Below, piece by piece: positions 7,521-43,999 of a DNA stretch of 56,150 nt (position 1 is its first letter; every line of letters begins with the position of its first letter). This DNA is from Vitrella brassicaformis CCMP3155 (Eukaryota > Protista > Chromerida). The notes below the pieces were generated by a model. It searched no databases, was not told the origin of the DNA, and saw only the letters and a list, made by a program, of their open reading frames with translations. The translations under genes were made by a program, and so were the position numbers. Location: contig CDMY01000536.1 of assembly GCA_001179505.1 (NCBI GenBank), positions 1 through 56,150 on the forward strand, read 5' to 3'.

Positions 7521-8555
7521 TGTGTGTGTGTGTGTGTGATGTGTGGTTTGCTGCCCGCACTCACCTTTTGCATGATTCCGTTTCTGAGCAGGCCGAATAG
7601 AGCGCTGCTGGGCGAGCTGTTGAAGTCGCCCGTGATGATGATGCTCGCCTCGCTCTCCGATAGAGTGGGCTGCAGCTTGCCCACGAGCGGATGCATCTGC
7701 TTGATCAGTGACCGACACTGCTGAAACCGCTCCTTGGACTTGGCGGGATCTGCCCGCACACACACACACACACACACAGCGTGGTGTGCTGTGTGGTGGG
7801 TGCCGTCTGGTTTAGTCTACTCACCCCCTTCTAAGTGGACGTTGGCGAGCAGGACAAGTGGGCCATCTCCGGCGGTTTTCAGCCTGAGAGCGAGCAGCAT
7901 GGCCCGTGACCGACTCGTCACATCCAACACCTCCACCCTATCAGGCTTGTAGAACACCGCATTGGCAGTGGGAAACCGTTTCCTGCACACACACACACAC
8001 ACGCACAGAGAGAGAGAGAGAGAGAGAGAGATTCACATCAGCCCTCTTCTAGCACACGGTAGTTTCCCCCACCCACCCACCCACTCACCTGTTCTTGCCG
8101 TTGCCCTGCAGAATGCCGACATAGCCGTTGTCCTCGAAGAACGGGGCGATCTCGTCGTCATACTTGTCAAGATCCACCTCTTGCAGACACAACACATCAG
8201 CGCCGCTCGACACAGCCAGCTCCCTCAGCCGCCTCCAGCGGTAGTCCCAGGCCAGATACTCACGAGGTACCCACCGATAGATCCCATTCTTGTTGAAGTT
8301 GCGGCGCGTATACGAGTCGGCCAAGAGGTTCTGCGACAGGACAGAGATCTCACCGTGGCCAGCCTGCAGGACATCGGCAGCACCAGCGCCTGTGTCCTCG
8401 CCCATCCGCCGCTGGATCCGTGCCTGCTGTCCCCGTAAGCTGAGGAACCGCATCGTCCGGGCGAAGAGCTCAGCGGGCAGCCCCCAGACCCTTGACAACA
8501 GAGAGTGCCGCCGGTTGGGTGGCTCTTGAGCTCGTCTCGACAGCAGCAGTCCCAT
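6975..8555 (-). CDS. CCR4/nocturnin/Angel-like endonuclease-exonuclease-phosphatase (EEP), about 5 exons
   Basis: EEP motifs SQNLLAD, ADVLCLQEVD, LANVHLEG, IITGDFNSSP, VDFVF, YGSDHLPVGAVF; ATG at 8555 (MGLLLSRR) is the likely start; TGA at 6975. Confidence 0.88.
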
Positions 8556-8729
8556 AGATGAGCCTCGATGAAAGGTAATGTGACGTGAGATGCCTCGTCG
8601 TTGAAGGTGAAAGATGGAGCGTCGGTGATCTCGGTGTGGCACGACAGATCGCAGAGCGTTGCAGATAAGACAGGGAAAGAGGAGAGAGGGGAGAAATAGC
8701 TGAGCGTTCTGTCGCCCCATCTCTCCCGC

Positions 8730-8752
8730 AGGGTTTTTCGGGTCCAGGGTTT
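8730..8752 (-). promoter_or_regulatory. Two AAACCCT telo-box-like motifs about 175-200 bp upstream of the EEP gene
   Basis: AGGGTTT at 8730-8736 and 8746-8752; regulatory role is inferred. Confidence 0.3.
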
Positions 8753-9000
8753 GGCTGACTCCCGTAAGCCTCGAAGAGTGATCCTGTTAGCGCTGGATCT
8801 GCCACCGAGTGCCGCGCAAGACGACCCGCGTCAAGAGGCGGCGTGCGGAGGAGGGTAAGTGTCACAGATGAGGAGGCAACGGACGCGCTTGCGTCCCTGG
8901 CGGGAGGGCAGATGCTCGCTTCCTTCTTCAACAAACTCTCAGTGGCCATGCAGAGCGAAGGTCAGGTGCTGCACAGCGAACTCTTCGAACAGTCCACGAA

Positions 9001-10983: not shown

Positions 10984-11434
10984 TGTGGTGCTGACTTGTG
11001 TGGGGAGTAGTTGCAGTTGGAGTAGTTGATGGAACTGCATCAGCTGCTGGTGCTTCATCTGCTGCTGGAAAGAAGAGTGACTGAGATGTATGCGTGGCTA
11101 CTGCAGTGTGTTGACTGCTGATGTTATGACCGGGCGGCTCTGCCTGTGCAGGCCTGTGTGAATATATTGTGCTACAACATGGATTTGGATCAGTCAGTCA
11201 GCTGCTCTGTACAAAATCCGCCACGATCCATTCTCCAATCTACCGACACACACACGTCATCTCATCCCATGCAAGCGATACACATCCATCCATCCATCAG
11301 TCTTTCTCACACACACACTCAGGCTCTCAATCTGTCGGCCCACCGCACTCTCACCACCCCACACCAGACCACACCAAACCACCCCGCCCGTCGATATACC
11401 CACCGACCGACCGACCGACCATCCCCTTGTTAAT

Positions 11435-14400
11435 TCAGAAGAATGGCGGCAGGTCCCTGCGCTGCTGCAGCCACGCCTGCATCAGCGTCAGAGGCTTCGC
11501 CACTGCCAACTCCCCTCCGCCACCCTCCTCCCCATCCCCACTATCTGCCGCCTTGGCCTCGCCCCTCCTCTGCCGCTTCACACGGGGCGCAGCGGCCGGC
11601 TCGTCAGATTCGTCATCCACACACGACGCACCTCTTGCACCACCACCACCACCGGCTGCTGCCGCTGCCGCCGATGAAGCAGCAGCTGCGGGGGCACCGC
11701 CGGCCTTGTCGTCTTGGAACTGGACGGCCCGTTTGCGTTTGCCAAGGATGTCTTGGCGGGCCTTCATGAGAAGCATGGGCTCTTTGATGGCCGGCCTGGG
11801 TGGCGAGGCGGGGTGGGGGCGGTTGGCGTGCTGTTGGTCGAGGGTGCGGTCGCTGAAGAGGTCGAGCTCCTTGTCGTCATGCGGGTTGTAGTCGGGCGGC
11901 GGCGCGTCCGCACGGGCCGCATCCATCTCAGGCTCCACCTCTATGTCTATGTCCATCTCTATCCCGCCACCCCTGTCCCTCTTCCTCTCCCCCTCCCCCT
12001 GTCCCTGCCCCCCAGCCGCCGCCTCCTTCTTGTCATGTTGCTCAGCCACGCCCATGGACTCCTCCTCCTTCCGTCTGCCCGGCCCCTGCCGCTCCGTCGT
12101 CTCCCCGCTGTCCACATCCATCGGCTGCTGCTCGGGCGTCTCCTCACGACCACGCTCTTGCTCTTGCTGTTGCTGGTGGTGCTGGTTGTGGTCTTGGATG
12201 GCGAGATGCTTGTCCTCGGCTATGCACTGGGAGGCGTTGAACATGGGTCTGGGTGGCGACGGGTCACGCTTGCTGCTCGTGCCGTGTGGGTGCTGCCCGT
12301 GGAGGGGCGGCGGGGCGTCTTCGAGCGTGTCTGGGAGGCCGCCACCTGAACCGGACTGAGACCGGGCAGCGGGGGGCTTCGGAGGACTGACAGAGACAGA
12401 GGCAGAGGCATCGGTCCATCAAATGGCCGTCTCAATGTATGTATCTTACCGTTTGTCCATGTTGCTGCCTGAGGTCGTGGTGTCTTGCTTCTTCTGCTTG
12501 TCGTCTTGACTCTGGCCGCTGCACACACACACACACACACACACGACAATTGATAAACCAACGAACAGCTTCGGCCCTCTCCCTTATCTCACCCGCTGGC
12601 CGGCTTGTCTCTGTCGTCGGACTTGCGCGTCTCCTCCGAGTCTTCCACACCGCCGTCGCCCCCCTGAACTTGCACGCCAATCTCTACGCCACCGCCCCTG
12701 CTCCCTTCCTCCCTCCCCTCTCTTTTGTCCCCACCCGACTTGACACACTTGTCCCTCTGACTGTCCGACAGGTTCTGCGGCTCACGCAATCCTCGGCGCG
12801 CCTTGGCCAGCTCGCCGACGACACGTGGCGCCTCAGGCATCTTCTCGCCGTCCTCCCGCTGGTCCTCTGTTGGCGGCAGGGCAGCGGCCGATTTCTCGGC
12901 GCTGGCATGACTCGCACCTCCACGGCGTGGGGGGGAGGACACGCCCGGCTCTAGGAAGGACGGCTCCTTCCTCAGCTGCTCGAGCTCGCGGTTGAGCTGC
13001 GACGATATGGCGAAAAGCGGGGCGGCCTTGCGGTTGGGAATGGCGGATGTCTGGCCCTGACTGATGGCCTGCTGTGGGAGTGCGAGTGCGGGTGCCTGCA
13101 GGACCTCCTCCGTCGCACCCATTCCATCGATAGCGCAGGAGGGCGGGGCATGCCGACGCATCGCCTCAGGGCGGCCACTGCCGGACTCGGCGGATGGCTC
13201 GCAGAGTGGCGGGGCGGGCCGCATGGCGACGATGTCGACATCGGCGGGGTCGTCCTTGTGTTGCTGCTCCTTGTCCTTGTCATGGCCTTGGTGTGAGTGC
13301 CCCGAGCCACTGTCGCCCGAGCCTCCGCGACGGAAACGCTTCAAGCTGATGGATTGACAAGGCAGACACAGAAATGGGTGGAGGGAAGGAGAGTCTGTGC
13401 ATATGGTGTGTGTGTGTGTGTGTACCTGGATGGTGCCCTTCCAGGGTCGGTCATCGGTAGGTTGAGGACGGTGTTTCCCCCCCTGGCTGCGGCGGCCCTC
13501 AGTGCCCGCGGGATGCGGGCATGCGCTCGCTGACTCTGACCCGAATCGGGCGTCAGCTGAGGCGCCTTCTGACTCGGCAAAGACGCTATAGACGCTGCTG
13601 CAGGTGACACAGCCATCTTCTCCTCCTCCTCGCCACCATCACCATCACCGGCACCACCACCAACAGCCCCGCTACGCTCCCCCTCCCCCTCGCGCTCGCC
13701 CTCATCACGAGCTACCTGACTGCCGCCTCCCGTCATCCCGTCATCTCCCTTCTTATCGTCAGCCGCACCCTTCTCCCCGTCAAGCATCACTTGGTCCTCC
13801 TCCTGCTGCTGTTGGTCGCCGTCCTTCATCTCCTCGTTCGCGTCATCCAGACGCTCTGCGCCTGGTCGACTGGGCCGTGCAGGGGACTCAGCGGCAAGCG
13901 CTGCAGCAGTGACCTCGCCGAGCATGGCGTCGGTCATGAGTGGGGCAGGTGCGTGTGGGGGTGGGACAGGTGGAGGGAGGGGGTCAGATCGGTCGGATGC
14001 TGTCTTGGATGCACCGTCGGGCTGCGATTCGGGCGACTCCCGGACGGTGGGCGGCAGCTCCATCGACGGGGGGTGGTCGGCCTGGTCTGAGTGGTCCGAT
14101 TGGGCCTGGGGCATGGCCGCGTCATCGCTGGCGTCGTTGCCCTCCCCCGCCCCCTCGCCGCCACCAATCATGTCCACCTCGTCTTGTGGCACCGTCTGCT
14201 CGTGCGGGTGGTCAGAGCCCTCCCCCTCCACCTCGCCATTCTGCCCAGCACCACAGCTCTCCATTTCGTGCTTGTCTTGCTCGGGCTGTTGCTGTTGCTG
14301 TTGCTGCTGGTGCAGGGGGGGCTCTCCGGGAGGTGCCATCTCCATGTCATGGTCTGGCAGCGTCCCATGGTCGGGCAGAGTGGCCTCGCAACCTCTCTGC

Positions 14401-16207
14401 AGAGACGGCGACGGAGGGGACGGGACGGCGCCGTTCTCGTTCTCGTCAACACTATCAACACCAGCAGCAGCGGCCCCCTGGCCATGGCCATGCTCGTCCT
14501 TGTTCGTCTGATCTTCCTTGGCCCCATCTCGGCCGAGGGGTGAGGGTGAGGGTGGGCGGGGGCGGCGGCGGACCGACTTCCCTGACTGCGGGGTCAGGAA
14601 CTCGTCATCGGCCAGCGGCTGGGTGGCCAACATCTGCCGTCCGCCCGGCGAATAGACGGGAGGGGGCTCGCTCTTCGGTGAGCCCCGAGCAGGTGATGCA
14701 CACTCTTGCTCCTGATCTTGGTCTGGGGCCTTCTGGCCGCCCTCTTCTCCGCCCCCCTCCCCTCCCTTGTCTTCCTCCTCGTCGGTGTCACGAATCGTCT
14801 CGATCTGCTCCGGCTCGCCTTGCCCACTTGCCGGCGCTGGGATCTCCTCTCCGTTGTTCTCCATCGGACGATCCTCGGCGACCCCCTCGCCATGCTGGGC
14901 GTCCCCAACATCCTCTTTGGGTCCGTCGTGGTTGCTCTGGTCCTGGTCGAGAGTGGGTGGCAGTCGTCTCGGGACGAAGGGTATCTGTGCGGTCTCAGCG
15001 GCACCCTGCAGCAGGGGGTGGGGGTGGGGGCGCTGCTGCTGCTGCTGCTCGTCCGGCTCCGACGGTTGTGAGCTGCGCCGCCGCTGTGCGAGCAGCAACT
15101 GCAGGCTGCCGGCTGACGGTCGCAGTGGGTTCCCGAAGGATGACTTTTTGCTCAACGCGGCCGACAGACGGGGCGGGGGGGCGTCAACCGTACCTGCCAT
15201 GGGAGGACAACATGAATGTGGGTAGACAGACATATGTGCAGGTGGGGCACGTGTCAGTAATGGTTGGGCTGACCAGCGATCATGTCTAGGAGGTCGTCAT
15301 CGTCCTCGACGCCGCCGCTCGACCTGCGGGGCGGCCTCTCGTCGCTGAGCCTCTCCTCCTTGACACGCGCACCGGGGCTGTCGCCATCTGAGTCCTCCTC
15401 TCCCTCTCCCTCTCCCTCACCCTTGGAGAGCAGGACAGCAAACGACACAGTCGTGTGTGTACGTGTGTGTGAATGGATGGATGGATGGATGGATGGCTGC
15501 ATGGCCCCAGGTGGTTGTGTGTGCGGCTAGGTGTGGGTGTGGTGCAGTGTACCTCTTCCAGTTTGCCGAGGGCGGTTCTGAAATTGGTGAACGGATCGTT
15601 GCCAGCGACCGGATCGCCGCCACCGACAGGATCGCCGCCACCGACAGGATCTTCGTCATCGACAGGTGCGCCCCTGACCATCAATCCCACCACAGCCACA
15701 CATGCGGGCGACACGTGTCACTGCTGGCCAGCTGGTCGGCTCTCTGTCCCTCTGACCCACTCACTCCAGCTGGCGAGCCTGCGATGCTGTTATGTCAACG
15801 TTGTCAATCTCGAGAAACGCATCCGCCTTGCTCTCGTTGGCCTGACAGACACCAAAGACAGACAGACAGACAGACGCACCCTCACACACACACTCGAAAG
15901 ATGGTAGGACCAGCACCACCACACCCTCCCTCGCCCCCCCTCCCTCTCCCCCGCCCCCCCCCCCTCTCTGCTGACTGACCTTGCTTTGTATGTGTGTGAA
16001 GTGTGCGATGAGGTTCGGGAGTTTGCCCTGTTTGACGGCGAGAGAGGCGGGCTTTGGGAATTCGCCGACCATGTCGTGTGGGACCATGATCTTGACTGAG
16101 TGGATGACGGCCCTGACGCTGCGGCCCTCCACGCCGTCCGCATCGTCATCGAACCACTGCAGGAATACCCTGGCGTCCACTATCGAATCTACACATCAAC
16201 CATACAT

Positions 16208-16240
<33 letters not shown>

Positions 16241-16555
16241 CGCTGCCGTCCTGACCCGTCCTTGGTGTGTGTGTGGTGTGTTCCAAGTGCTGACAGACAT
16301 ACTGTTGAGCCCATCGATGTCTGGTTCGTCGCAGAGTGAGTCGCTCATCATGTTACTCTTGCAGGATCCCGTCACGATGGCCTTGACACACGCTCGGTTG
16401 TCATGCAGCACACACGTCGCTATGGCATCACAGCCCTGGCAGTCCACCGTCTTCGACAACTTGACCAGCCGGCACGGTTGGTTGATACCTGCACGGACCA
16501 GACGGAGGATGCGATGCATCCATCGCAATTGCTCCTGGGCTGCAATGCCATCCAT
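11435..16555 (-). CDS. Large multi-exon protein: N-terminal OB-fold-like domain (TPP1/Est3-like) plus a long acidic, low-complexity tail
   Basis: Exons join in frame (DGLN|NSIVDARVF); long ORFs 13341-15233, 12589-13344 and 11435-12244 have coding-like composition; stop TGA at 11435. The domain call is by motif pattern only. Confidence 0.7.
15593..15664 (-). repeat. Four 18-bp coding tandem units (VDDEDP-VGGGDP-VGGGDP-VAGNDP)
   Basis: GGATCGCCGCCACCGACA occurs twice exactly, with degenerate copies on each side. Confidence 0.9.
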
Positions 16556-16899
16556 CTCAAGCCTTACTGAGATCGATGCGCCGGAGGGGTTTTGGCGTTG
16601 ACCTATCGAGGTTGTGTATCTCCCTGCGCACGAAGTCCTCCACAGCCGACGCCACCCATGCCCGCTTCTTCACGTACTCCGTCATTTCTTACACGCAAAC
16701 CTTCTCCTCATTACAGCAGCCCTCACAGGCCACACGCTGGCCGAAAAGGCCCTTCAACCCCACACACATGGCTTGACACATGGTGCAACTGCAACTCTCA
16801 GCGCGAGCTTTTGGGATCCCCTCGTAAACACCGTGACGCAGCGCTCCAGGCCTGTCAGGAGGCCCAGACCACACACGCACATCCGAGTAGCTGCCCACC

Positions 16900-18337
16900 A
16901 TGTTCTTTTCTGCTGGCCGCCCGTCTCCCTCCTCACTGGTGGGTGAACTCGCCTCGCTGAAGGAGAACCCCGCGACATTCAGCCTATTGTCACAGCACGG
17001 CCTGGAGGTGGCACAGCCATCCGCGTCGAGCATCTTCGGGGCACATCAAGCGAGCATCACCCTCTCTGTGGAGGGAACCGACATGCCCATCATCCGCTGC
17101 TCGCAGGCCGCCTCACTCGAGGTCCCTGCACCTTCGCTCGGTACACAAAGTGCACACCAGCCACCATTGAGTGTCACAATTTCATTCATTCAGGCATCTT
17201 CTGACCCATTTCTGTGTCTGCCTGTGCGTGTGTTTTGTGTTTGTGTGTGTGCGCAGCGATTCTGACAGGCAACGAGAATGGCCGGTACCCTCTGTCGAAG
17301 AAGCATATCGATGAGTTCCTGCAGTCATTCGGCGACTACCAATCGCGGCAGCTCGTGTCGGACAACTGGAAGGGGAGCCTCTCAGCGACCAGCAGAGGCG
17401 AGGTGGCCAACGTCCACGTGGCGGGACAGGCGTGCTTCCTGCCTGTGGCCGAGACCTCCCCCCTGTTTGGCGGCCACGACGCCGTGCCTTTCCGCATCAC
17501 CTACTTCAACTCCAAGAGCCATCCCAGCAGCCCCGCTGCTATGGTGGTCGTCGCCTCGGCATTCGGGGCGTCGTCACAAGCACCCACCTCCAGGAGGCAA
17601 CACCTGTTTCACAACAGTGACGGCAAGAGGTGAGGTGGGTGACAGGCCAGACGGCATGGGCTGTCTTAATGCTCCATTTCCTTTTTCTCGTCGTCAGGTG
17701 TCCCTTTCTGGTCGAGAGGACGTCGGCCAGTCGCATGCGTGAGGGCCAGCACCAGCAGCAGCAGGAGGAAGCGGCCCCCGCGGCCCTATCTGCGCAGGAG
17801 GAGGCCAAGAACTGCCTGCTCGTCATCGAGGTTCCCTTGAAGACGACCCCCCAGCCCCTGTTCGGCACGCCACACGCTCTCTTGGCTTCTGGCGGAGGGA
17901 TATTCGGCTCGCCGGCGATCACACAACCTGGCACGGCAGCGGGGGCCATTCCCACACAACAATTCGGAGGTGGTGAGGCCGATGAGAGAGAGGGTCGATC
18001 CATCGGATGCTTACCTATCCTGTCTGTCTGCCTGCGTCTTTCTTGGTGTCAGGTGGTTTTGGAGGTGGCGGTGGTTTGTTCGGCAGCTCTTCGGGTCAGG
18101 TCGGAGGGGGCCTGTTTGGCAGCAGCGGCGCGGCGGAGCCACCATCTGCATCTGCATCTGCTGGTGCCCCGACCGGCACTCAGGAGGCGGCCGTTATCTC
18201 CCTGGGGGAGGAGGGGGGACTGTGGCCTTACGACCCCTCAATCAAGATCGAACGCGATCAAGTGGTCAGTTGGGGGGGCACCGAGCAAACACACCTGGGA
18301 CGGGCACACAAACCCCTCTCCTCATTGTGTCTGACAC

Positions 18338-18374
<37 letters not shown>

Positions 18375-19431
18375 TGTGTGCGTGTGCCGTGCAGGCGCCT
18401 CTGAAGGTTACCATCCTGTTCTACTACGGTGCGTCGTCGTCGTACCTCGACTCATCGACGGTGCAAAGGGTCAAGGCGCAGCTCGAGGCGGCCCGCGCAC
18501 AGGACTTCTTGACGCAGCTGGTGCAGCAGTGGGAGGCGTTGGGCTATGACGGTGCGCCTCGGGGTGCCCCCACGGCCGGCAGCAAGGTCGGCGGGGTGCA
18601 GCTGTCGCCCCAGGAAGCCGAGGAGATGCGAATGCGCCAGAGGGACGAGCCGCTCTTCACTGCAGCCGTCAGGTGGGGGCGACAGGGAGGGAGGGAGGGT
18701 GACAGCATGAGTGAGGCGATGGTACACATCCATGTGTGTGTCGTGTTGGATGGATGGGCGCAGGCGCGACATCTACCGTGTGTTGAGCGACAAGAGCCGT
18801 GCAGCGGCTGGCGTGACGGCCAAAGCGCCCCGTGACCGCCTCACACAAGAGGAGGCCACAGCGTCCGCCGACGACTCACCACTCGCCACCATCCTCGCTG
18901 TCAAGAAAGGCATGTACACCTGCGACCATCAACGCCCATCCTATGCCATCCCCTCATTCCCTCCTCTGCGGCCATACGTCAGATGGTCCCGAGTTCTTCT
19001 TCACGAGGCAGCACAAGCCGGCCACCCTGCCGGCGGGCTTCGAGCCGGTCTCGTCGACGGAGCTGGTGGAGGCCATCTCGTTTATCGGCAAGGCCTCCAC
19101 CGTGGCCACTCGGCTGACCAAGGCGTTTGAGGAGTATCTTGTTCGTGAGCTGGTGCCCAACTGGACCACTGCTGACGACCTGACTATCCACTTCCTGACC
19201 GCCTTTGCCGCAGAGGTGAGACAAGACAAGGCGCACAGCTGAGGTCGTGGCATCTATCTGCGCGCTTGTGTGTGTGTGTGTGTGTGTGTGCTTGTGCAGT
19301 TGTCTCCTCGTTTCGGTTTGGCTGACCGCGTGTGCCGTGTAGGGCTGTCGGCTGATGACGTGGCCTTTGTCAATTCGTCGCCGCAGGTGGATCCCAAGGT
19401 CAAGACACTCATGCAGACCTTCCAGTCATAG
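16900..19431 (+). CDS. Uncharacterised multi-exon protein with MPIIR and QACFLP motifs and an FG/GLFG-rich insert; 3' end uncertain (19431 or 19524)
   Basis: CCACCATG start at 16900; GT-AG exons encode TDMPIIR, GNENG, AGQACFLPV, RITYFN, EEAKNCLLVIEVPLK, PLKVTILFYY. Confidence 0.72.
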
Positions 19432-28705: not shown

Positions 28706-31700
28706 TCACAGTGCTTGTGGCCGCGACGGGTCTTGCATCGACCCCTCAGCCGGCGACCCCCCACCATCCTCATCCCTCTCCCGGTCCCCAATGCGCTGCG
28801 GCGCTGCTGCTGCTGCATCCGACAACCTGCCGTCAAGCAGCCCCGAGGCCAGCTCATCCAAACGGAGGGGCGTCGGGGTCAGGTTGCGCTGGTGTGACGG
28901 CGTTCCCACGGGACTCGGGGCGGGGGCGACAGCCGCCAGACGCTGCTGCTGTGAACTCCCTGACACAACTGAGTGTGCCGCAGGTGTGGCCAGGGGATGG
29001 TAAGGGACGGGGGGATGATTGGGGGACAGCAACAACCCCGGAGCAGCCACGGGGAATGCACTTGGACTGGGCGTCCGCATGCCGCCCAGACGTTGCGGAT
29101 CGACAATCGAGTCGGCAGGCTCCCGCTCCCGCTCCCGCCCGACGGAGTGCTGTGAGTGCGACGATACCTGGCGGAAGGGCAATGGGGCTGACGGCAGCCG
29201 GTCCACCTGCATAAACATCGAGTCGGTCGACCCGCGAGGCCGCCGCGATGACGTTGACGGGCGTGAGGTCATGGGGGAGCCACGGATGCGGTCTTGGCTC
29301 GGCCGGGAGCGTCTTCGGAAGGTTTCGGCTGGCCGCAGTGGGTGACGATACTGCTGCTGGCTTGATGAAGAGGAGCCTGTGGCAGTGCTGCCCTTCCAGC
29401 CGAGGACCGACTGGACAGTCCGGTTAGCGGTGCGCACGGACGCGGTTAAGAGGGAGCCGACGCCAAATGGGTCGACGGCCAGGGCGTCGTTGGGCGCGAG
29501 CATGTCCTCCAAGGCCACCAGACCGAGCAGACGGCGGAGAGCCTGCATGACAGCCAAGCAGTCGATCGGTTCAGGACAGGAGATGATCTCAGTTTCTTGT
29601 CTGGCTCAGCTCAATGACCGACCTGATATCCGATGCTCTTTATGCGCGAGAGCGGCGTCCCCATGACGTCAATCGAAAACACAAACCGATGCCTGCAGAG
29701 ACACACACAGACACACACGGACACAGACACACTCAGGAGTAGGTGTATGGTGTGGTTTATGGTGGGGGGGATGGTGTGTACTGACCATTGTTTGTATAGT
29801 TGGCTGAGGAAGTGTGTCCTGATGAGCCCCCGGATGTCAGCTGTGGTGAACAGCCGACTGTTGTGCTGGATCGGGTCCCACCGGAAGTCCGCCTCACGAA
29901 GCACCAGGAACTGACAATACACACGCACATGGACACACACGCACACACAGCCAGCCGGCCGTTTTGCAGATGCAGACGAGCCCGCCCCAGCACCCCACCC
30001 CACCTGTGTGTTGTGCTCACCTTGATGACTTTGTAGATTGAGATGTTGATCTGGAGGCTCTGCACCCACACGAAGTCGACATAGATGTACGGCCCGCCGC
30101 GCAATGCTCCCTCCGGCGGCGGCTCAACAATGGCCACCATGCCCACGTTGGCCGCGCCCCCAGTGGTGCCGTCATCGGGCTGCAGCGCCTCGAGCATCGC
30201 GCGGAAGGCCTTGCCGAGGGGCTTGAGCACCGAGTCGACCAAACCGAAGTCGAGCTGCACTGCCAGTGGGGCGCAGTGGACCGTCAGTTGGTTGATGTGG
30301 AGGTGCACCTCCTTCCTTCCCGCCTCCTTGCCGCCCACTGACAGTTGGTGCAGCCACTCATCCTTCAGCTGGATGTCCAGCCGCAGCAGGAAGGTCGGCA
30401 GTGCCACTGACGACGGATACGGATGTGTGTCAGATGACACGGGCACGTCGGGCGCTTCGGGGGCGTCTTCGGCGAGTGACGGCAGCCCGGGCTGGCGGGG
30501 TGGGCGTCGCCACCTGCCGTGGCTGGTGCTGTGGGGTGGGCTGCTGTGGGGTGGGATGCCGAAGGAAGGGCTGGACGGTGCCTCCGCCCCCTCGCCACCT
30601 CGTGCTGCGCGTGGTCGCAGGATGTGGGGCATGGGGGTGACGGCCGAAAGGTTGAAGAGGTCGATCGACCCCACAGACACCGTCAGCCGCTGCAACTGCA
30701 CTCGCTGCGCGTCGCCCGTCACTTTCTTGGTGGACACTGCCACGTTCCTCAGGAGCAGCTCCAGAGGCACCAGCAGCGCCCTCCCGCGGCTCGTGTAGCC
30801 GATGCCACCTCGGGGATGTGTCGTGGGGCCACCGCGTGTACAGGGCAGGGACTTGTCGATGGCGACCACCACCTCACGAATGGTCAGGCTCAGTGTCATC
30901 GGCAGCTGGCGGCCTCCACTGGCATGTGCGGACATGGCTGCATGCGGCCCGACCGCCGACCCTTGGAGGCTTTTCCTCTCACTCGGCCAGGTCATGCCGC
31001 CCATGGCCTCGGAGGGAGGGAGGGGCGACTCGACGGCAGCAGCAGCACCTGCAGCACCAGCAGCCATTGTGGACTCCGACACCATCTCGCCCTCAATGGA
31101 CACCATCGTGGTGGGCCCATGGCGGCGCACGCTCACGGCAGCCAAATACCGACAGTGCCGGGCCTGCAGCCCGTCTCTCCTGAACTGCATCAGCAGCGTC
31201 TCGACGGCGTGATGCAGCTGGCCCTCACACCCACACAGCGCCGCACTCACGATGCTCCCCCCCGCCGTGCGCGCAAGGGTGCGGGCGTGAACACTCTCGA
31301 TTGGGCTGGGGGCCATCGGTGGCAGAACTCGCCGCTGCTGCTGTGGCGGCACAGCAGCAGGGGTGTCGCAGGGAGGCGGTGCATCGGGCTGGGGCGGCTC
31401 ACGCGATGGCGTTGGTGGGTGCGGGGCCTCAGCTGCCTCCGTGCGTCGGCTGCCATCCGGGGTGGGGGATGGTTGGAATCGCCAGACGGAGAAGGAGATG
31501 TGATCGGTGCCAGGCTTGTCCAGGTCAACGGTGAGTGCCACCTCGGGCAGCCCTCTCTCGCCGGCCTCGCCTTGCGACGTGTCGAAGTGGAGCGGCCGTA
31601 TGGCTATGCCGATGTGCCGCTGGCCCCAGGGGTCATCCAAACCGAACGCCGTCTCGACGTCGGGCGGGATGCACAAAGGGTGCCGCGAGCCGCGCTGGAT

Positions 31701-34700
31701 GACGTACACTCGAAGGGGCAGCTGGTGACGGAACAGCAGCAGGGGAGCCGGGCCGTCGTGGGTCGGCGGTCTTGGGACAAAGCCAGGTCGCTGGAAGGGC
31801 GTGTCCACAATGATAAAGGTGATCCCGGCGTGTTCGAGGATCTGCAGGTGGACCAGGTCGGTCCGCACGGCGTCTGGATCAAGCAGCCGTGAGCCCGCAC
31901 TCGCACTCCTGGCCCCCTTGCCACTCGTCTGCATGATGGAGTGCAAGTTGAGGTAGGCCGACTGCGGGCGGTTGCAATCGATGGCCGGCGACCACACGGC
32001 GTTGTAAGTCGACCACGTGGGGGCGTCCTGATGGGCTGCCCTGGCGCGGGAACGCCGGCCCTCTCTCGCCCTGCCGCCATCTCCTGCATCGTGTCCACCC
32101 AGTGACGCGTCGCCATAGTGTCGTCGGATGAGAAGGCACTTGTGCTTGTTGGCGTCCCGCCACGATAAGGCGAACAGCTGGCCCGAGGCGAGGGTCGCCC
32201 TGGCCCGCCCGGCAGTTGGGGGGTCTGGTTGGTGTGACCTGGGAGGGCTGAGGCTGAGGGAGCCCTCACTCTGCCCGATGGCCTGCTGCTGCTGGAACTC
32301 CAGCAGGAAGGGACAACGGTTCAGCAGCACGTGCTTGGGCTTGAAGCTTATCACTATCGCCTGAGGGAGGGAAGGGAATGAACGAACCAGCCAGCACTGA
32401 CTCATGCCATGCTGTAGATGGGAGCGTGTGTATGTCTTGGCTCACTCACCTCATCGAACTCTGGCCCCTTCATCTCACAGTCGAATGAGACCTCCTTGCC
32501 CCCAGCCAGCGTGATGTCGTACGGCCCGCTCTCCGAAAAAGACGCCCCCAGCTTCCGCACAGCGCCTTTCTTGTGAGTCAGGACGATCGACTGCAGCCTC
32601 GACGACCGCAATCCATCACCCCTCAGTGCGAACGACATGTGCCGGCTCGACAGCAGTGCGGGCTGACACGCCGCAATCTCACAGCCGCTCTCCACTGGCT
32701 GCTGCAAGTCCTCCTGTAGCTCGGCAGCTGCGTCCGTGAGGAAGGTCAGGAGAGATGGGGGTGCGGGGGGTTTGCCGTCCTTGTCGCCTCGCGGGCTGGC
32801 CCATGACTTGCCGTTGAGCCCCCACAGCCCCCCTCTCTGCTTAGACGTCGGGGCGCCCGGGGCGTCTCTGTCCCTCAGCTGTCGGGCGAAGGAGGGGCAT
32901 GGCGGCAGGTTGACGGCCGCCCCGAATCCATCGGTGGCCGTGGGGCTGAAGGCCGGGAGGTACTCGAGGTGCAGCGGGGTGTAGTTGAGGAGCCAGAAAT
33001 GGCAGCTGGTTCGGATGCACAGCACGTCGCCGTCGAAACTCACCTTGACCTGCACATCGATTGTCCCGCCGTCGGTCACGCCGCACCCCACCATGTGCGT
33101 CACGTGATACAGGAGGCCACCGTGCCGCCGACCCCGACCCCGGCCCCGACCGCTGCTGCCCGCAGACGAGTCCATCAAACTCTGGCTGCTCCGGCTGTCC
33201 ACATCGCCAGCTGGGGCCGAGTCGGCCGTGAACGTGCTGCCGACGCTCTGGTGCAGCCCCTGCTGCTGGAAGTTCGCGTCAGATGCCGCGCTCTGCTTGC
33301 CGTGTGGCGACTCCTGCGGAGCCGACACAGACCGGAGAGACGATTGGGGCAGCAGGTCCGTTGCGATGGGCATGGGATGGGGGCGTGTGGGGGCCATCTC
33401 AGGCCACATGTCCACTGAAGCATCGTCCCGTCGTGACGTCGGCGACCTGATCGGCAGGATCGCGCCAGAGGGTTGGCCGGCCATGGTGCTAACGCCACCC
33501 AGGTGAACCGGTGACGGCAATGGCGACGTGACCTTGACGCGCGGCCGCGCCCCCTCCTGCTGCGCCATGGGTGTCTGCGTCACCCGATGTGGTCTGCGGG
33601 GTGGGGAGGGTGGCGGCTGGCCAGTGAGGGCAGGGAGTGCAATCTCGAGTGGGTCGCTCCAGTCGCCTCCCGGGAAGCGGAGGCTGAGCAGGAGGGGCTT
33701 GTTCCAGTCGAACAGCGTCAGGCCCTCGTCATGGCCCGGCGGGAGGCAGCGCGTGATGTCCCTGTGTGGGATCTCTTGAGACACAGACCACCAAAGCGAC
33801 CTGTGAAATGAATGACGACCAAAGCCACACATGCACATGAGGAGGGAGGGAGGGAGATTGCTGAATATTCTTGCGTCGCTAGACCCTGACCTGGGGAGGC
33901 AGTTCCTGAGCCGGACTGGCTCAAAGAAGGTGAGCAGTAGGGCCGTGTCGTGGTCGACGCTCTCCGTCTTGAGGCCGCAGACGAAGGTGCGCTGTGCGGA
34001 GACGACTGCCGTGAGGATGGAGCAGCGGCTGATGGCGGCCTCCTGTGCAGCGGCATTGGTGGTCTTGAAGTTGCATGAGGCCGTCCAGACGGGGCCTGTC
34101 TCGGACCGCAGCTTGACAATGAGGCTGACGCAGTACGCACACACGCTCAGGGGGACGGGCTTCAGCTGCTGCGGCAGCAGCTCGCACTGCCAGTCCTGCA
34201 GGCACACAAGAAGGCAAGGCTTGAGTGGATCAATGCGCACCACTGTGTTCTCTGTCTGGTGATGTCTCGGCTCACCGCACTAGCGTTCGATTCGGCAAGG
34301 AAGAGTATTTCGATGGGGTATGTCAGGTTGCTCTGCACCCGCACCGGGCTGCCCAGCTGCAGCACCCGCCGGCCCATCAAGGCTGTCTCGAGAATCGTCA
34401 GCTGCCCGAACCGCCCACTCTGCGACGCCCGCGTGTTGCTACCCGTGTCATACACGGGGGCGAAGTCCCTCAAAACCTGAAAAAGTTCAAGAGATTCGCG
34501 ACGCGAAACAGTGGAGAACACATGGGTGTGTGTATGGGGCGGGGCACTGACTGACCTGCAGAGGAAGAACCCGATTCGCCATGGGGAAGTCGGGTACGTC
34601 GAGGTGCAGCGACGAGGCCTTGTGGAAGTCGAAGAGCAGGGCCTCCTCGCCAGGGTACAGCTCACCACACCGCGGGGGGCCGTCCGGTTCGCCCCCGGGC

Positions 34701-37700
34701 AGCTCGTCGCGGTACCGCAGCAGATGGCACGTGCTATTCTTCAACCAGTACGTGTCCTGAGCAGACAGACCAGAAGACCAACCAGCATAAATCAGATGCA
34801 CCTTCCCCCCTCCCTCCCTCCCCCCTCTCTGGCTGGCTGGCGGGCGTACCTCCCGTTCGTTTCTGGAAAGGAATCGCGGTATCTGCCTCAGGTCGTGGTA
34901 GCACGGCTCGTCCTGCCGGATGCGACGAGGCGTCTCGATCCGCTGATACTCCAACCCTGGCCACACGGGGGCCTCCCTCGCACCAGTGGCGCTGCTGCTG
35001 CCTGCCATCACGTTGGTCGACGGCAGGGATGTGACCCGCATGAGGGACTTGGTGAGCAGGCCACGGAGGACCAGCGGGGGGGTCGTGGCGCGCTCGGGAG
35101 TGGCGATATGGTGGTGATCCGCATAGCCACGCGGCCCACCCGGTTGTAGCCGCCTCAGTGACACGGCGAGGGAGTCCTCTTCGACGGCGGTTCCTCCGCT
35201 CTCGTACCGACTTTGTGTGCTGATGGCCATTGCTTTGGCGAAGTGGCGGCTCTCCTTGGCGGCATACCACAGGCCCGGCAGGACTTCCGGCACGACGCAG
35301 AGACGCACACCCTCGGGCAGATCGACAGACAGACTAGGATGGCGCAGGTCTTCTGCTTGTGGCTGGGCCGGTGGAGCGGTGCGGCGGCCGCGGCCCGTCT
35401 GGGGTGGTGTGGAGGGAGCCTTGAGGGGCACCACGGTGGCGGTGTGGAGTGGGAATGGCGCCACCACTTGCAGCAGGCTGGCAGAGGTGAGCACCATGGG
35501 GACATCGCGGGACGGGGGAGGCCGCTGACACACGTACACGGACACCTGAACGTTCAACACACATTACATACATTGGCAGGTGACATGACGTCGTCACTGC
35601 ATGGCATGGCATGGCTGCATGCGATCCGTGGTGGTCACACACAATTGTACACACCTGCTCGATGTCTGCGTCCAGCCGGAGGCCCGGGTCGTCGGCCACG
35701 AAGGACGTCGTGTGTGTCGCCTTGGCGAAGCACGTGCTGGCCGACAGCTGCACCAAAGGCGTCAAGTAGGGGTGAGCCGCGAACACGTAGCTGAAACTCT
35801 CGACGCTCCACTGCACCTTGATGACCAGGTGCGGCACCCGCCGCCTCGCCTTCCTGTTTGGCCTCCCCAGTCCGCCCCGCGACATACCGATGCCCAGCTT
35901 GGAATGGGCACCCACATGGTTCCACGCTCGCCGATGCGGTGGCTGGCGGCCCGACAACTGAACCCTCTCCCCGGACGAGGCAAAGCCGGCGGAGGGACGC
36001 AAGTCGGCCACCACTTCGGGATCGAGCAGGTGGTCCTCTGCGTAGGTTGCGGCCGACATCTCGCTCTCGCTGTAGGCGTCGTCCGACTCGTCAGTGTGGT
36101 CGGAATCCGTCACGGTGCCCACCGTGGCCGCACACGGCTCCGCCTCCCTTGTCGGCTGGCCGGGCGGCTCGCTGGTTGAGCCCCCTCGCGCAGTGAATCG
36201 TCTGACGGATGCCTCCATGTCTTGGACCACTTTGATGATCGGCACTAGGTCGGCGGCGGTCATGAGGAAGCGCAGGGGCGTGATGAAGCCCTGTGTCTTG
36301 AGCTGGATGACCTGCCGCCCCTTGAAGTGCTTGAGCCTGCTCTCGGCCGACACAGTGGCGTCCCAGGGGCTCTCCACCAGCGGCCGCATTGAGAAGTCAC
36401 ACAGAGGGAGACTGACGCACTCCACAGCGTGGCCCACGGCATCACCAACGTCAGCGTCGTCTTCATGGCCGCCGGGAGTGATGGACAGCAGCGAGTCCTG
36501 ACACTCCTTGGTCAGCGCCCGCCCCTCACACACATCCCTGGACGTCGACGCGAGCAGGCACTGGGCGAACCGCGGAAAGCAGAACACCGGCACTGCGGGT
36601 AAGCCGCCACCGTCAGGGGGTCTCGCCGTGAGACCACCGACATATGGCTGGCAGGCCGAGAGATCCATCCGTATCTTAGGGAGGTACTCGCACAGGAACC
36701 TGCGCATCTCCAGCTCCGCCTGTTGCCGTTTCTCGCTCCGTCCAGCCGCCTTCTTCGCCCCCGTGTGGTCGTCGCCCAGCCAGCTCAGCGCCCCGCTCCT
36801 CGTGCCGTCCTCGCCATGCATCTTGACGCTGAAGTCCTGACACCGAAACATCACCGCCTCGACCAGCACCTCCTGCACGACGTCACTCGCCGACCGGCGG
36901 AGGGTCTGTTTCCTCGGGCCCGAGGCACCCCACAGGACCAGGCTGCCGATGTCGAGCACGGCGGACACCACGGGGGGCCGCTTCTTCCCCTGTCCATCTG
37001 GGGGCTGCGACTGGCTCCACGCCCTGGGCGAGTCGGATCGGTCCAGGGACAGCGTCACATCCAAGGGGCTGACGCGCCGCTCCTGGGCCTTCTTGGGAAG
37101 GGCCGCCTGAGAGCCCACTCGCTCGGCGTACTTCTGTGCGTCGTCGCCCATCTCCATCTCGACCGTGACGAATGAGGGCGTGCGGTGCAGCGTGGACGCC
37201 CCGTCATACACCGATGCGCTGTCCCTCGACATTCGGACGTCCGTCGTCGACTGCCGTGGCCTTGCGGCCTGGTGTTCCTGGTCTCCGGTGACAGTGTCTT
37301 GGTGGTGGGGTCGGTCTGACGAGTATCTCCTCTTCGTGGCGGTGGCTGCGTCGTGCAACGACGCGAAGACGGCCTGGAAGTCGCTGACGAGCAGCATGAC
37401 CGGATGCATGTCTACGGGCAGGAGTGAGAGCTGCAGCTCGGGGCTGTGGCACTCGACGTGCGCCGCCATTCGGCCATGGCGGCCGGGATGGCTGATCTGG
37501 ATCGAGAGGGACGTCCCGTCATGCCGCTGCTGAAGCCCGGGCTGAACCACTGCGGCAGCATCGGATATCGCTCCCACGCCGGTCACAGGAGGGGCCTCCC
37601 ATTGAGACCTTTCCACGTTCAGCAGCGGCATCAACAGCCGGGCCTCTTCCCTCTCGTCGAGCCGCCTCGCTCCCACTGACAGGAGCTGGAATGCCGGCAC

Positions 37701-43700: not shown

Positions 43701-43999
43701 AGCCGCAGAGCTGCCGACTGACCGATGGGCTGGCGCTTGACGGTCAGGTTTTCCAGCACGATTGGCTCATGCCAGCCATCCCATGTGACGCGCAGGTTGT
43801 CGAGATCGGCGATGAAGGCGCGAAGGACCCTCGATAGCATGTACCTGACAGACAAGACACCACATGATATGATATGGACACACAAAAGTAAGTGCTGCAG
43901 GCTGGCTGCAGCACTGCATGTAGCGGGCAGAATCCGTCCTTTGATGACATCCTACTGACTGTACGCCGGTGAGCACCTGAGTAAGGAACGCAGCACCAT
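28706..43999 (-). CDS. VPS13: VPS13-like bridge-type lipid transfer protein, several thousand aa, multi-exon
   Basis: Chorein-N pattern MVLRSLLR|YMLSRVL..LENLTVK..GYVGRLEVSIPW..LKVDSVFLVL. VAB/SHR-BD-like repeats (YWLKNST, VRVQSNLTYPIEI, FWLLNYTPLHLEY, KHVLLNRCPFLLEF). VPS13_C-like SIDVMGTP. Long ORFs are linked by GT-AG introns. Confidence 0.82.

Follow-up and report, generated by a model that had tools for sequence, protein, structure and literature searches.

A transcribed gene of Vitrella brassicaformis encodes a candidate TPP1-like protein with a putative Ku80-type peptide in its tail

Results

Gene structure and transcription

The window, which is the whole stretch of 56,150 nucleotides analysed here (contig CDMY01000536.1 of Vitrella brassicaformis CCMP3155), contains a minus-strand gene that consists of 10 exons and encodes a protein of 1,466 aa, as determined from spliced transcript contigs of public runs. 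The gene is real and transcribed. The transcript contigs cover positions 11000 to 16815, all nine introns are of the GT..AG type, and the reading frame is open throughout the 1,466 aa, while the longest stop-free stretch of the gene is 651 aa. The coding region (11435..16685, minus strand) starts at the ATG at 16685 and ends with the stop codon at 11435-11437, and a TAA is found in frame at 16689-16691, just 5' of this ATG. Exon 1 (16568-16815; coding part 16568..16685) encodes aa 1-39 and the first base of codon 40, exon 2 (16303..16488) encodes aa 40-102 with codons split at both ends, and exon 3 (15980..16188) encodes aa 102-171. Exons 4 and 5 (15765-15841 and 15553-15673) encode aa 172-237. 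Exons 6-10 are located at 15274-15421, 13426-15193, 12593-13345, 12450-12518, and 11435-12386, all likewise on the minus strand.

The position of intron 1 (16489..16567, minus strand; 79 nt, GTAAGG...GTGCAG) affects the reading of the N-terminus. An earlier note on this DNA had described an ORF at 16196-16555 on the minus strand, which exists, and had taken its ATG at 16555 as the start codon. It had also quoted five peptides as counterparts of OB elements in human TPP1. Since the joint from the exon at 16568-16815 to 16488 is present in transcript contigs of three runs, both the ATG at 16555 and one of the five peptides, QLRWMHRIL (16505-16531), are intronic, and the true start is the ATG at 16685. 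The other four peptides, CRLVKL, ATCVLHDNRACVKAIVT, GLNNSIVDA, and VRAVIHSVKIM, are found in the mature protein. GLNNSIVDA spans the 16303|16188 splice, a joint that had been proposed previously and is confirmed by transcript contigs of two runs. Intron 2, which is removed at this joint, carries an in-frame stop.

N-terminal domain

The protein has one order-prone domain, which comprises about aa 1-171 and is encoded by exons 1-3; the domain length is thus corrected from 140-154 aa to approximately 171 aa. Exon 1, the true N-terminus, is helix-prone and contains KRAWVASAVE. Exon 2 shows alternating hydrophobic runs with a strand-like character (CRLVKL, IATCVLH, and ACVKAIVT). The exon 2 piece alone gave no usable AlphaFold model (pLDDT 53.5). 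A zinc ribbon was considered for the seven cysteines of this exon and rejected, as only a single CxxC is present. The exon 3 piece alone, predicted by AlphaFold from the single sequence (pLDDT 67.3), forms a long β-hairpin (16085-16183, minus strand), whose strands consist of 13 and 15 residues (residues 2-14 and 20-34 of the piece), followed by a short helix and a pair of short strands. Ribosomal uS3 and secretins were rejected as fold relatives of the exon 3 fragment, the Foldseek/VIA-align matches being at noise level.

The separate exon pieces were scanned against 24,736 Pfam models with matches considered up to an E-value of 10. The only family matched by the exon pieces of the domain is TPP1/ACD (PF10341). 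The match is to the exon 2 piece, with 11.9-12 bits and an E-value of 0.19-0.2, far under the gathering cut-off of 26.5 bits. The aligned stretch (16343..16474, minus strand) places aa 45-88 on profile positions 42-83 of 158, so that the full profile would cover approximately aa 4-163, the whole globular part. By our own arithmetic, an E-value of 0.2 over 24,736 models corresponds to a per-model p of about 8e-06, at which a genome with on the order of 1e5 exon-sized pieces would, by our own estimate, give about one match by chance. No Pfam match, TPP1 included, was obtained with the piece of exon 1 or that of exon 3. The Est3 and TEBP_beta families are not matched by any exon piece, and the kinship with Est3 and TEBP-beta suggested previously is not borne out at this level. 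RPA, Stn1, Ten1, RMI1_N, SSB, tRNA_anti-codon, and Telo_bind also gave no exon-piece match at E-values up to 10, though HMMER filters drop most matches above an E-value of about 0.1 and could hide weak similarity to other OB families. The strand-2/strand-3 pattern h-h-h-x-D-x-x-x-h-x-h-h is common to many OB families, and the PF10341 match may therefore reflect OB folds in general.

When PF10341 is mapped collinearly onto the protein, the predicted exon 3 hairpin would fall at the place of the last two OB strands, which we take to be GRLLLLQ and FYLQVDRFSLL in TPP1. The five human fragments quoted in the earlier note, chained in order on the real domain, reach a score of 62 against 31.4 ± 8.1 for shuffled sequences (z 3.8; 0.1% of the shuffles reach 62), a score that is biased upward because the fragments were picked after the sequence had been seen. 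Exon 1 alone is free of this bias, as it did not enter the reading of the earlier note; its KRAWVASAVE scores 14 against LRPWIRELIL, the N-terminal TPP1 fragment, while the intronic peptide scores 8 (p about 0.03-0.10). The intronic position of one of the five motifs further indicates that short matches of this kind arise easily by chance. The most likely, but putative, fold of aa ~1-170 is an OB-type β-barrel of the TPP1/ACD class.

Disordered tail

The long disordered tail described in the earlier note is present: aa 172-1466 (approximately 1,295 aa) are acidic (net charge −104) and of low complexity, and hydrophobic residues make up a fraction of 0.15. Two short helix-prone segments, separated by a DPVGGG repeat, are located directly after the domain (aa 172-237). 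This position is that of the POT1-binding helices in TPP1 (PMC8653790), and the segments, if helical, could play the same role. NFRTALGK is found at aa 227-234, approximately 50 aa before the peptide EDDDDLLDMI described below. The remaining linker (11498..15421, minus strand; exons 6-10) is acidic, rich in G/A/P/E/D/S/Q, and approximately 1,200 aa long, and no Pfam family was matched by the large pieces of exons 6-10. Two basic clusters with NLS-like patterns, KRKR at 11726-11740 (aa 1366-1370) and RVKRQRR at 11552-11578 (aa 1420-1428), both on the minus strand, suggest that the protein may be targeted to the nucleus.

The only order-prone stretch besides the N-terminal domain is the hydrophobic peptide at the C-terminus (11438..11497, minus strand; aa 1447-1466), which ends with ...LTLMQAWLQQRRDLPPFF and is a candidate partner-docking peptide. 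In the order analysis, the two order-prone stretches extend over aa 1-157 and aa 1450-1466. A resemblance of LM.AW in this peptide to the TIN2-binding helix of human TPP1 was considered and set aside, a PDB sequence search with the C-terminal 40 aa giving no match. An acidic peptide, ELDLF, is found at aa 1323-1327. The protein terminates in LPPFF, where the canonical PIP pattern Q-x-x-h-x-x-a-a is absent. SQ/TQ sites are not enriched (13 vs 10 ± 3).

Ku80-type peptide

EDDDDLLDMI (15278..15307, minus strand; aa 276-285) is encoded at the 3' end of exon 6. Its DDLLDMI is identical at 7 of 7 residues to the core of the C-terminal DNA-PKcs-binding motif of human Ku80, a match for which 1.1e-06 occurrences are expected from the composition of the tail. 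The DNA-PKcs interaction motif at the C-terminus of Ku80 is EEGGDVDDLLDMI (PMC8549938), and NBS1 and ATRIP use related sequences to recruit ATM and ATR (PMC6990542). The Vitrella protein shares with Ku80 the preceding glycines and acidic residues, and an acidic run followed by a putative DDLLDMI-type helix is present in a flexible region. Contrarily, the extreme C-terminal position is absent, as the peptide is internal (aa 276-285 of 1,466), and there is no Ku core. EDDDDLLDMI is also compatible with a SUMO-interaction motif of the acidic type. Retention of intron 6 would end the frame at 15254-15256, seven codons after EDDDDLLDMI, and so place the peptide near a C-terminus; intron 6 is removed in the spliced contigs listed. 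To our knowledge, no Ku80-type peptide has been described in TPP1, and the putative Ku80-type peptide in the tail, as recognized from its residues, is a new observation here.

Searches for relatives

An exhaustive HMMER search with exon 3 against 1.84 billion representatives gave no true relative. The sole match, which comprises 10 matched stretches, is the translation of a tandem repeat and was judged spurious. Among proteins of 324-1031 aa, a word search with exon 7 (588 aa) gave no relative, and a word search with exon 2 (within a stop-free stretch of 157 aa) gave no candidate. These protein word searches are limited by length, and the gene product of 1,466 aa, which is outside their reach, was likewise not found. 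Scans of JGI metagenomes with exons 3 and 2 returned pattern matches but no tblastn relative. No usable match was obtained from the ESM Atlas for exons 2 and 3, with recognition scores of 1349 and 1412; a score of 2300 is usual for known families, and exon-sized queries are expected to score low. PDB sequence searches with exons 1, 2, 3, and 6 and the C-terminal 40 aa gave no relevant match; a phosphatase match with an E-value of 0.93 was dismissed as irrelevant. NCBIfam gave no match.

Discussion

Comparison with known systems

TPP1 consists of an N-terminal OB domain, adjacent POT1-binding helices, a disordered linker, and a C-terminal partner-binding helix (Myler et al. 2021, PMC8653790). 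The Vitrella protein shows the same layout, with a folded N-terminus, helix-prone segments directly after the domain, a linker that is long and disordered, and, at the C-terminus, a short hydrophobic peptide. The domain of approximately 171 aa is comparable in size to the 158 positions of the TPP1/ACD profile, the sole Pfam family matched. The linkers differ, being approximately 1,200 aa and acidic in Vitrella but 50-700 aa and Ser/Pro-rich in animal TPP1 (PMC8653790). According to the same study, the TEL patch and NOB residues of TPP1 lack conservation already in vertebrates other than mammals. TIN2 and the TIN2-binding motif of TPP1 have been traced in animals only, and the motif is absent from most invertebrates (PMC8653790), so that a C-terminal partner in Vitrella would be something else.

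Ciliate TEBP-beta, Tpt1, and p50, as well as fission yeast Tpz1, also combine an N-terminal OB domain with a tail that binds a Pot1-type protein. The three ciliate proteins are functional counterparts of TPP1 in the same supergroup as Vitrella. Ciliate Tpt1 was found by co-purification with Pot1a, not by similarity to a known protein (PMC6562869), which suggests that a weak sequence signal is to be expected in the lineage of Vitrella. The Vitrella exon pieces differ from TEBP-beta in that they do not match the Pfam TEBP_beta family. Budding-yeast Est3 is reported to be a protein-binding telomerase subunit with one OB fold, which is of the TPP1 class (PMC7338525). No Est3-family match was found in the Vitrella protein. 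Unlike the Vitrella protein, Est3 is small and has no tail. Damage sensors of the hSSB1/SOSS-B1 and RPA70N types carry a single N-terminal OB domain in front of a disordered tail and are linked to PIKK signalling. Contrarily, no tRNA_anti-codon or RPA-family Pfam match is found in the Vitrella protein, and its tail is approximately ten times longer.

Interpretation and alternatives

These features make a TPP1-like adaptor a plausible but unproven identity for the protein, one that we hold tentatively and at somewhat less than even confidence. The gene structure, transcription, domain layout, and weak match to the TPP1 profile are observed, and the OB fold, the telomere role, and all partners are inferred. 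The identity put forward in the earlier note survives in the layout and in PF10341 as the only Pfam family matched, while it is weakened by a score of 11.9 bits against the required 26.5 and by the intronic position of one motif. As in TPP1, Tpz1, and Tpt1, the OB domain would serve as a protein-binding platform for telomerase rather than as a DNA binder. The segments after the OB domain could hold a POT1-type binder of single-stranded telomeres, and the C-terminal peptide might link the complex to a bridging partner. At chromosome ends, the acidic peptide of the Ku80 type may serve as a docking site for a PIKK kinase (ATM, ATR, or DNA-PKcs) or for a different reader of acidic-hydrophobic motifs. 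It is quite improbable, in our estimation, that all of this holds together, i.e., that the protein is an undescribed TPP1-type end protein of chromerids and apicomplexans carrying its own Ku80/NBS1-type PIKK-docking peptide, with recruitment of telomerase and of the kinase in one polypeptide. In other organisms, the link between telomerase and kinase is divided among separate proteins; fission yeast, for example, uses Tpz1-Ccq1 together with Tel1/Rad3, and budding yeast uses Xrs2 together with Tel1.

The short peptides can be read differently. Another OB-type adaptor of genome maintenance, with a single OB fold and acting in DNA damage or replication in the manner of hSSB1/SOSS-B, RPA70N, or RMI1, would use a PIKK-type peptide and a PCNA-box-like LPPFF for docking with no specific telomere role, a reading that is possible but rather unlikely. 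The seven-residue identity of EDDDDLLDMI to the Ku80 core, with its relatives in NBS1 and ATRIP that recruit ATM and ATR (PMC6990542), is consistent with this reading, as are the second acidic peptide ELDLF and the terminal LPPFF. The PIKK-type peptide is, however, internal in Vitrella, whereas it is C-terminal in Ku80, NBS1, and ATRIP; the PIP pattern is not formed, and the SQ/TQ count stays within the range given above. The exon 2 pattern, which we take to be generic for OB strands 2 and 3, suits any such adaptor; against this, no Pfam OB family but TPP1 was matched at E-values up to 10, though HMMER filters hide weak scores, and EDDDDLLDMI also agrees with an acidic SUMO-interaction motif. 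A very divergent subunit of the Nbs1/Xrs2 type, with an FHA-like, phosphopeptide-binding β-sandwich at the N-terminus, an Mre11-binding peptide of the NFK type (NFRTALGK), and then a PIKK-binding acidic peptide, is highly improbable. The order of NF[KR] and a DDL-type peptide at a spacing of about 50 aa presumably recalls the C-terminus of NBS1, and retention of intron 6 would bring EDDDDLLDMI near a C-terminus as well. Nevertheless, the contigs listed remove intron 6, the second phenylalanine of NFKxFxK is missing, and the pieces of exons 1-6 gave no match to FHA, BRCT, or Nbs1_C. Residues that mark an FHA domain (GR, SxxH, and NG) are not in place, and the exon 3 strands of 13-15 residues are, as we assume, too long for an FHA sandwich. 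FHA/Nbs1 was rejected as the main reading on the absence of FHA/BRCT/Nbs1_C signals and the wrong strand lengths.

The remaining alternative questions the domain itself. A lineage-restricted orphan, whose β-rich domain is unrelated to OB folds or TPP1 and matches Pfam by chance, and whose function lies in the acidic scaffold and its peptides, is on balance unlikely. Every homology search was blank, a sub-threshold Pfam match is expected about once per genome by chance by our own estimate, and one of the five motifs is intronic, all of which agree with an orphan. The low ESM Atlas scores agree as well, but such scores are expected for exon-sized queries. A chance match would, however, have to fall on exactly the family that the earlier note had already named, and do so with the correct offset, within an N-terminal domain of suitable size and ahead of the layout known from TPP1. 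The exon 3 hairpin, as predicted, also fits the last two OB strands. The TPP1-like gene is a reasonable candidate, not a discovery.

Biological implications

A TPP1 homologue in an alveolate would be unsurprising to a specialist, because ciliates have TPP1 homologues. No description of such a homologue in apicomplexans or chromerids was found in the literature searched, and a 2023 review of Plasmodium telomere proteins gives only PfTRZ, PfAP2Tel, and PfGBP2 (PMC10704157). The protection of single-stranded telomeres and the recruitment of telomerase are essentially uncharted in the lineage of the malaria parasite and Toxoplasma. If the TPP1-like protein were confirmed in this free-living relative, it would be a starting point for a structure-guided search for the counterpart in the parasites. 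The Ku80-type peptide would further suggest that the protection of chromosome ends is directly connected with signalling by damage kinases.

Gene model and transcription

Contigs from four public sequencing runs (X1, X2, X6, and X7) were aligned to positions 11000–16900 of the window (5,901 letters). One X6 contig (record 16, 3,947 nt) and two X7 contigs (records 17 and 18) align piecewise without mismatches and skip nine short segments, and are therefore spliced transcripts. Two of the nine joints are also found in smaller X1 and X2 contigs. With each joint set to the nearest GT..AG, the spliced contigs define ten exons on the minus strand: 16685–16568 (exon 1, from the ATG), 16488–16303, 16188–15980, 15841–15765, 15673–15553, 15421–15274 (exon 6), 15193–13426, 13345–12593, 12518–12450, and 12386–11435 (exon 10). 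Joined together, they give an open frame over 1,466 codons. The window is GC-rich (0.49–0.67), and its introns are short, with GT..AG borders and CA/GA microsatellites inside. Intron 1 changes the frame and intron 2 carries an in-frame TGA, so that no stop-free stretch spans the whole N-terminal domain encoded by exons 1–3. The transcript contigs reach 16815 at the 5′ side, and an in-frame TAA (16689–16691) shuts the frame upstream of the ATG at 16685. The 5′ leader (16686–16815, minus strand) holds three small upstream ORFs, two in the main frame ended by this TAA (ATG 16781 and ATG 16769, 30 and 26 aa) and one of 9 aa (ATG 16711).

The earlier note had proposed a TPP1/Est3/TEBP-β OB-fold protein from an ORF at 16196–16555, which is present and whose splice to 16188 is correct. 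The start codon chosen there and the first of five peptides likened to human TPP1, QLRWMHRIL (16505–16531), lie inside an intron (16489–16567), since three runs join 16568 to 16488, whereas the other four peptides are retained in the mature protein. Exon 1 is the true N-terminus, where an R-x-W-hydrophobic helix start also occurs coincidentally (KRAWVASAVE). That the intronic peptide looked as convincing as the real one is a warning on short-motif matching. When the five human TPP1 fragments cited there are chained in order on the real 171-aa domain, the score is 62 against 31.4 ± 8.1 in shuffles, a value inflated because the fragments were chosen after the sequence was seen. Exon 1, the sole out-of-sample element, scores 14 (p 0.03–0.10).

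Several neighbouring features should be noted. A head-to-head gene (16821–18550, plus strand, ATG 16900) has GLFG-like repeats near 18040–18130 and possibly encodes a nucleoporin-like protein; three of its exon pieces have no Pfam match. Its transcript contigs and those of the subject gene end ~6 nt apart (16821 and 16815). Downstream, an open stretch at 8088–8786 (minus strand) weakly matches the endonuclease/exonuclease/phosphatase family PF03372 (E 0.0018, below the cut-off). Very long ORFs in a row at 29757–43885 (minus strand; 882, 613, 357, 1217, 603, 640, and 412 aa) are probably one giant gene; neither of its two largest pieces has a Pfam match at E ≤ 0.01. A 617-aa ORF (51108–52961, plus strand) shows a weak WD40 repeat match (E 0.0024).

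N-terminal domain and protein layout

Composition analysis of the 1,466 aa identifies aa 1–20 and 22–157 and the final 17 residues as order-prone. The N-terminal domain ends at ~aa 171 and has a hydrophobic fraction of 0.36. The region between the order-prone stretches is rich in G/A/P/E/D/S/Q; its hydrophobic fraction is only 0.15, and it carries a net charge of −104.

The TPP1/ACD family, PF10341, is the only one found in Pfam scans of the exon pieces. Exon 2 matches it with 11.9 bits (E 0.2), below the cut-off of 26.5 bits, so that the pieces scanned are not assigned to the family by sequence. The alignment pairs aa 45–88 with profile positions 42–83 of 158, and the mapping is collinear: the profile ends would land at ~aa 4 and ~163, exactly the globular part. 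Exons 1 and 3 have no Pfam match; HMMER filters conceal matches above ~E 0.25, and exon 3 therefore adds less than ~11 bits. Neither an NCBIfam search nor PDB sequence searches of the domain pieces gave a match.

Folding was done on single exon pieces of the domain. For exon 3 (69 aa, single sequence), the prediction has a pLDDT of 67.3: residues 2–14 and 20–34 of the piece are the strands of a long hairpin, and one short helix and a further pair of short strands are also present. The exon 2 prediction (pLDDT 53.5) is unusable. By the collinear Pfam mapping, we infer that the predicted hairpin may sit where the last two strands of a TPP1-type OB barrel would be.

Two short helix-prone segments (aa 172–197 and 223–237), with a DPVGGG repeat between them, directly follow the domain. 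The C-terminal peptide ...LTLMQAWLQQRRDLPPFF (aa 1447–1466; 11438–11497, minus strand) is the sole order-prone stretch outside the domain. Its end, LPPFF, is near a PCNA-binding box but does not match it, the glutamine being one residue out of register. NLS-like basic clusters are found at aa 1366–1370 (KRKR) and 1420–1428 (RVKRQRR). TPP1 proteins consist of an OB domain, adjacent POT1-binding helices, a disordered linker of 50–700 aa, and a C-terminal helical docking motif (Myler et al., PMC8653790), a layout matched here by the domain, helix-prone segments, disordered linker, and C-terminal peptide.

Ku80-type peptide in the linker

The disordered linker contains EDDDDLLDMI (aa 276–285) at the 3′ end of exon 6 (15278–15307, minus strand), the last seven residues of which agree at every position with the core of the peptide at the C-terminus of human Ku80 (EEGGDVDDLLDMI). 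The occurrences expected from tail composition are 1.1e-06, and a chance origin is unlikely, even with after-the-fact recognition allowed for. The segment also fits an acidic SUMO-interaction motif and may be one. Pfam and PDB searches of exon 6 gave no match. In Ku80, this peptide binds DNA-PKcs as a short helix that is flexibly tethered (PMC8549938); NBS1 and ATRIP have related sequences, through which ATM and ATR are recruited (PMC6990542). The peptide is C-terminal in Ku80, whereas it is internal here. If intron 6 (15194–15273, minus strand, 80 nt) were retained, the frame would end seven codons past the peptide (15254–15256; ...DMIAGQPNHY), and the resulting isoform of 292 aa would carry the peptide close to its C-terminus, the position that such peptides have in Ku80, NBS1, and ATRIP; the intron is spliced out in the spliced contigs listed. 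A second acidic peptide, ELDLF, is located at aa 1323–1327. SQ/TQ sites are not enriched in the protein (13 versus 10 ± 3).

Search for relatives

No relatives were found, and the gene's own product was likewise missing from the searches. Word searches gave no candidate with exon 2 and none among proteins of 324–1031 aa with exon 7, and neither metagenome scans nor the Atlas contained a relative. An exhaustive search of 1.84 billion representatives with exon 3 returned one match, P0001 (979 aa), which was rejected because it is a translated tandem repeat. Its E of 3e-11 was reached by adding up ten weakly matching stretches; repeat proteins can mimic significance for short queries in this way. 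The absence of relatives across the searches is suggestive, the exhaustive search having covered exon 3 only and exon-sized queries being weak. Fast divergence is normal for the TPP1 class; it was by co-purifying with Pot1a, and not through its sequence, that Tetrahymena Tpt1 was discovered (PMC6562869).

Interpretation

A TPP1-like adaptor for end protection and telomerase recruitment is the best reading, though a tentative one. The E of 0.2 over 24,736 models corresponds to a per-model p of ~8e-06, which is striking for a family named beforehand. However, the proposal itself grew out of that local similarity, and by our estimate the ~1e5 exon-sized pieces of a genome would give ~1 match of this kind by chance. 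The context lifts the match over this background: the domain is N-terminal, of the right size and at the right offset, and the TPP1 layout follows. An orphan domain whose TPP1 signal arose by chance is a rather unlikely rival.

The Ku80-type peptide also fits a different kind of OB-fold adaptor, one that acts in DNA damage or replication and brings in a PIKK kinase, which we likewise consider somewhat improbable. This reading and the TPP1-like one are compatible in mechanism; combined, they would give an OB adaptor at telomeres that has its own docking peptide for a kinase, a possible but improbable reading. A divergent Nbs1-type protein, which could carry such a peptide, is very improbable, as no FHA, BRCT, or Nbs1_C signal is found in the pieces of exons 1–6.

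Among the papers searched, none describes a homologue of TPP1 from either apicomplexans or chromerids, and the telomere proteins of Plasmodium in a 2023 review are unrelated ones only (PMC10704157). The surprise would be modest, because ciliates already possess TPP1 counterparts. If the TPP1-like reading is true, the protein would be a very divergent new member of the TPP1 family, set apart by the unusual length of its acidic linker and by the additional peptide of the Ku80 type.
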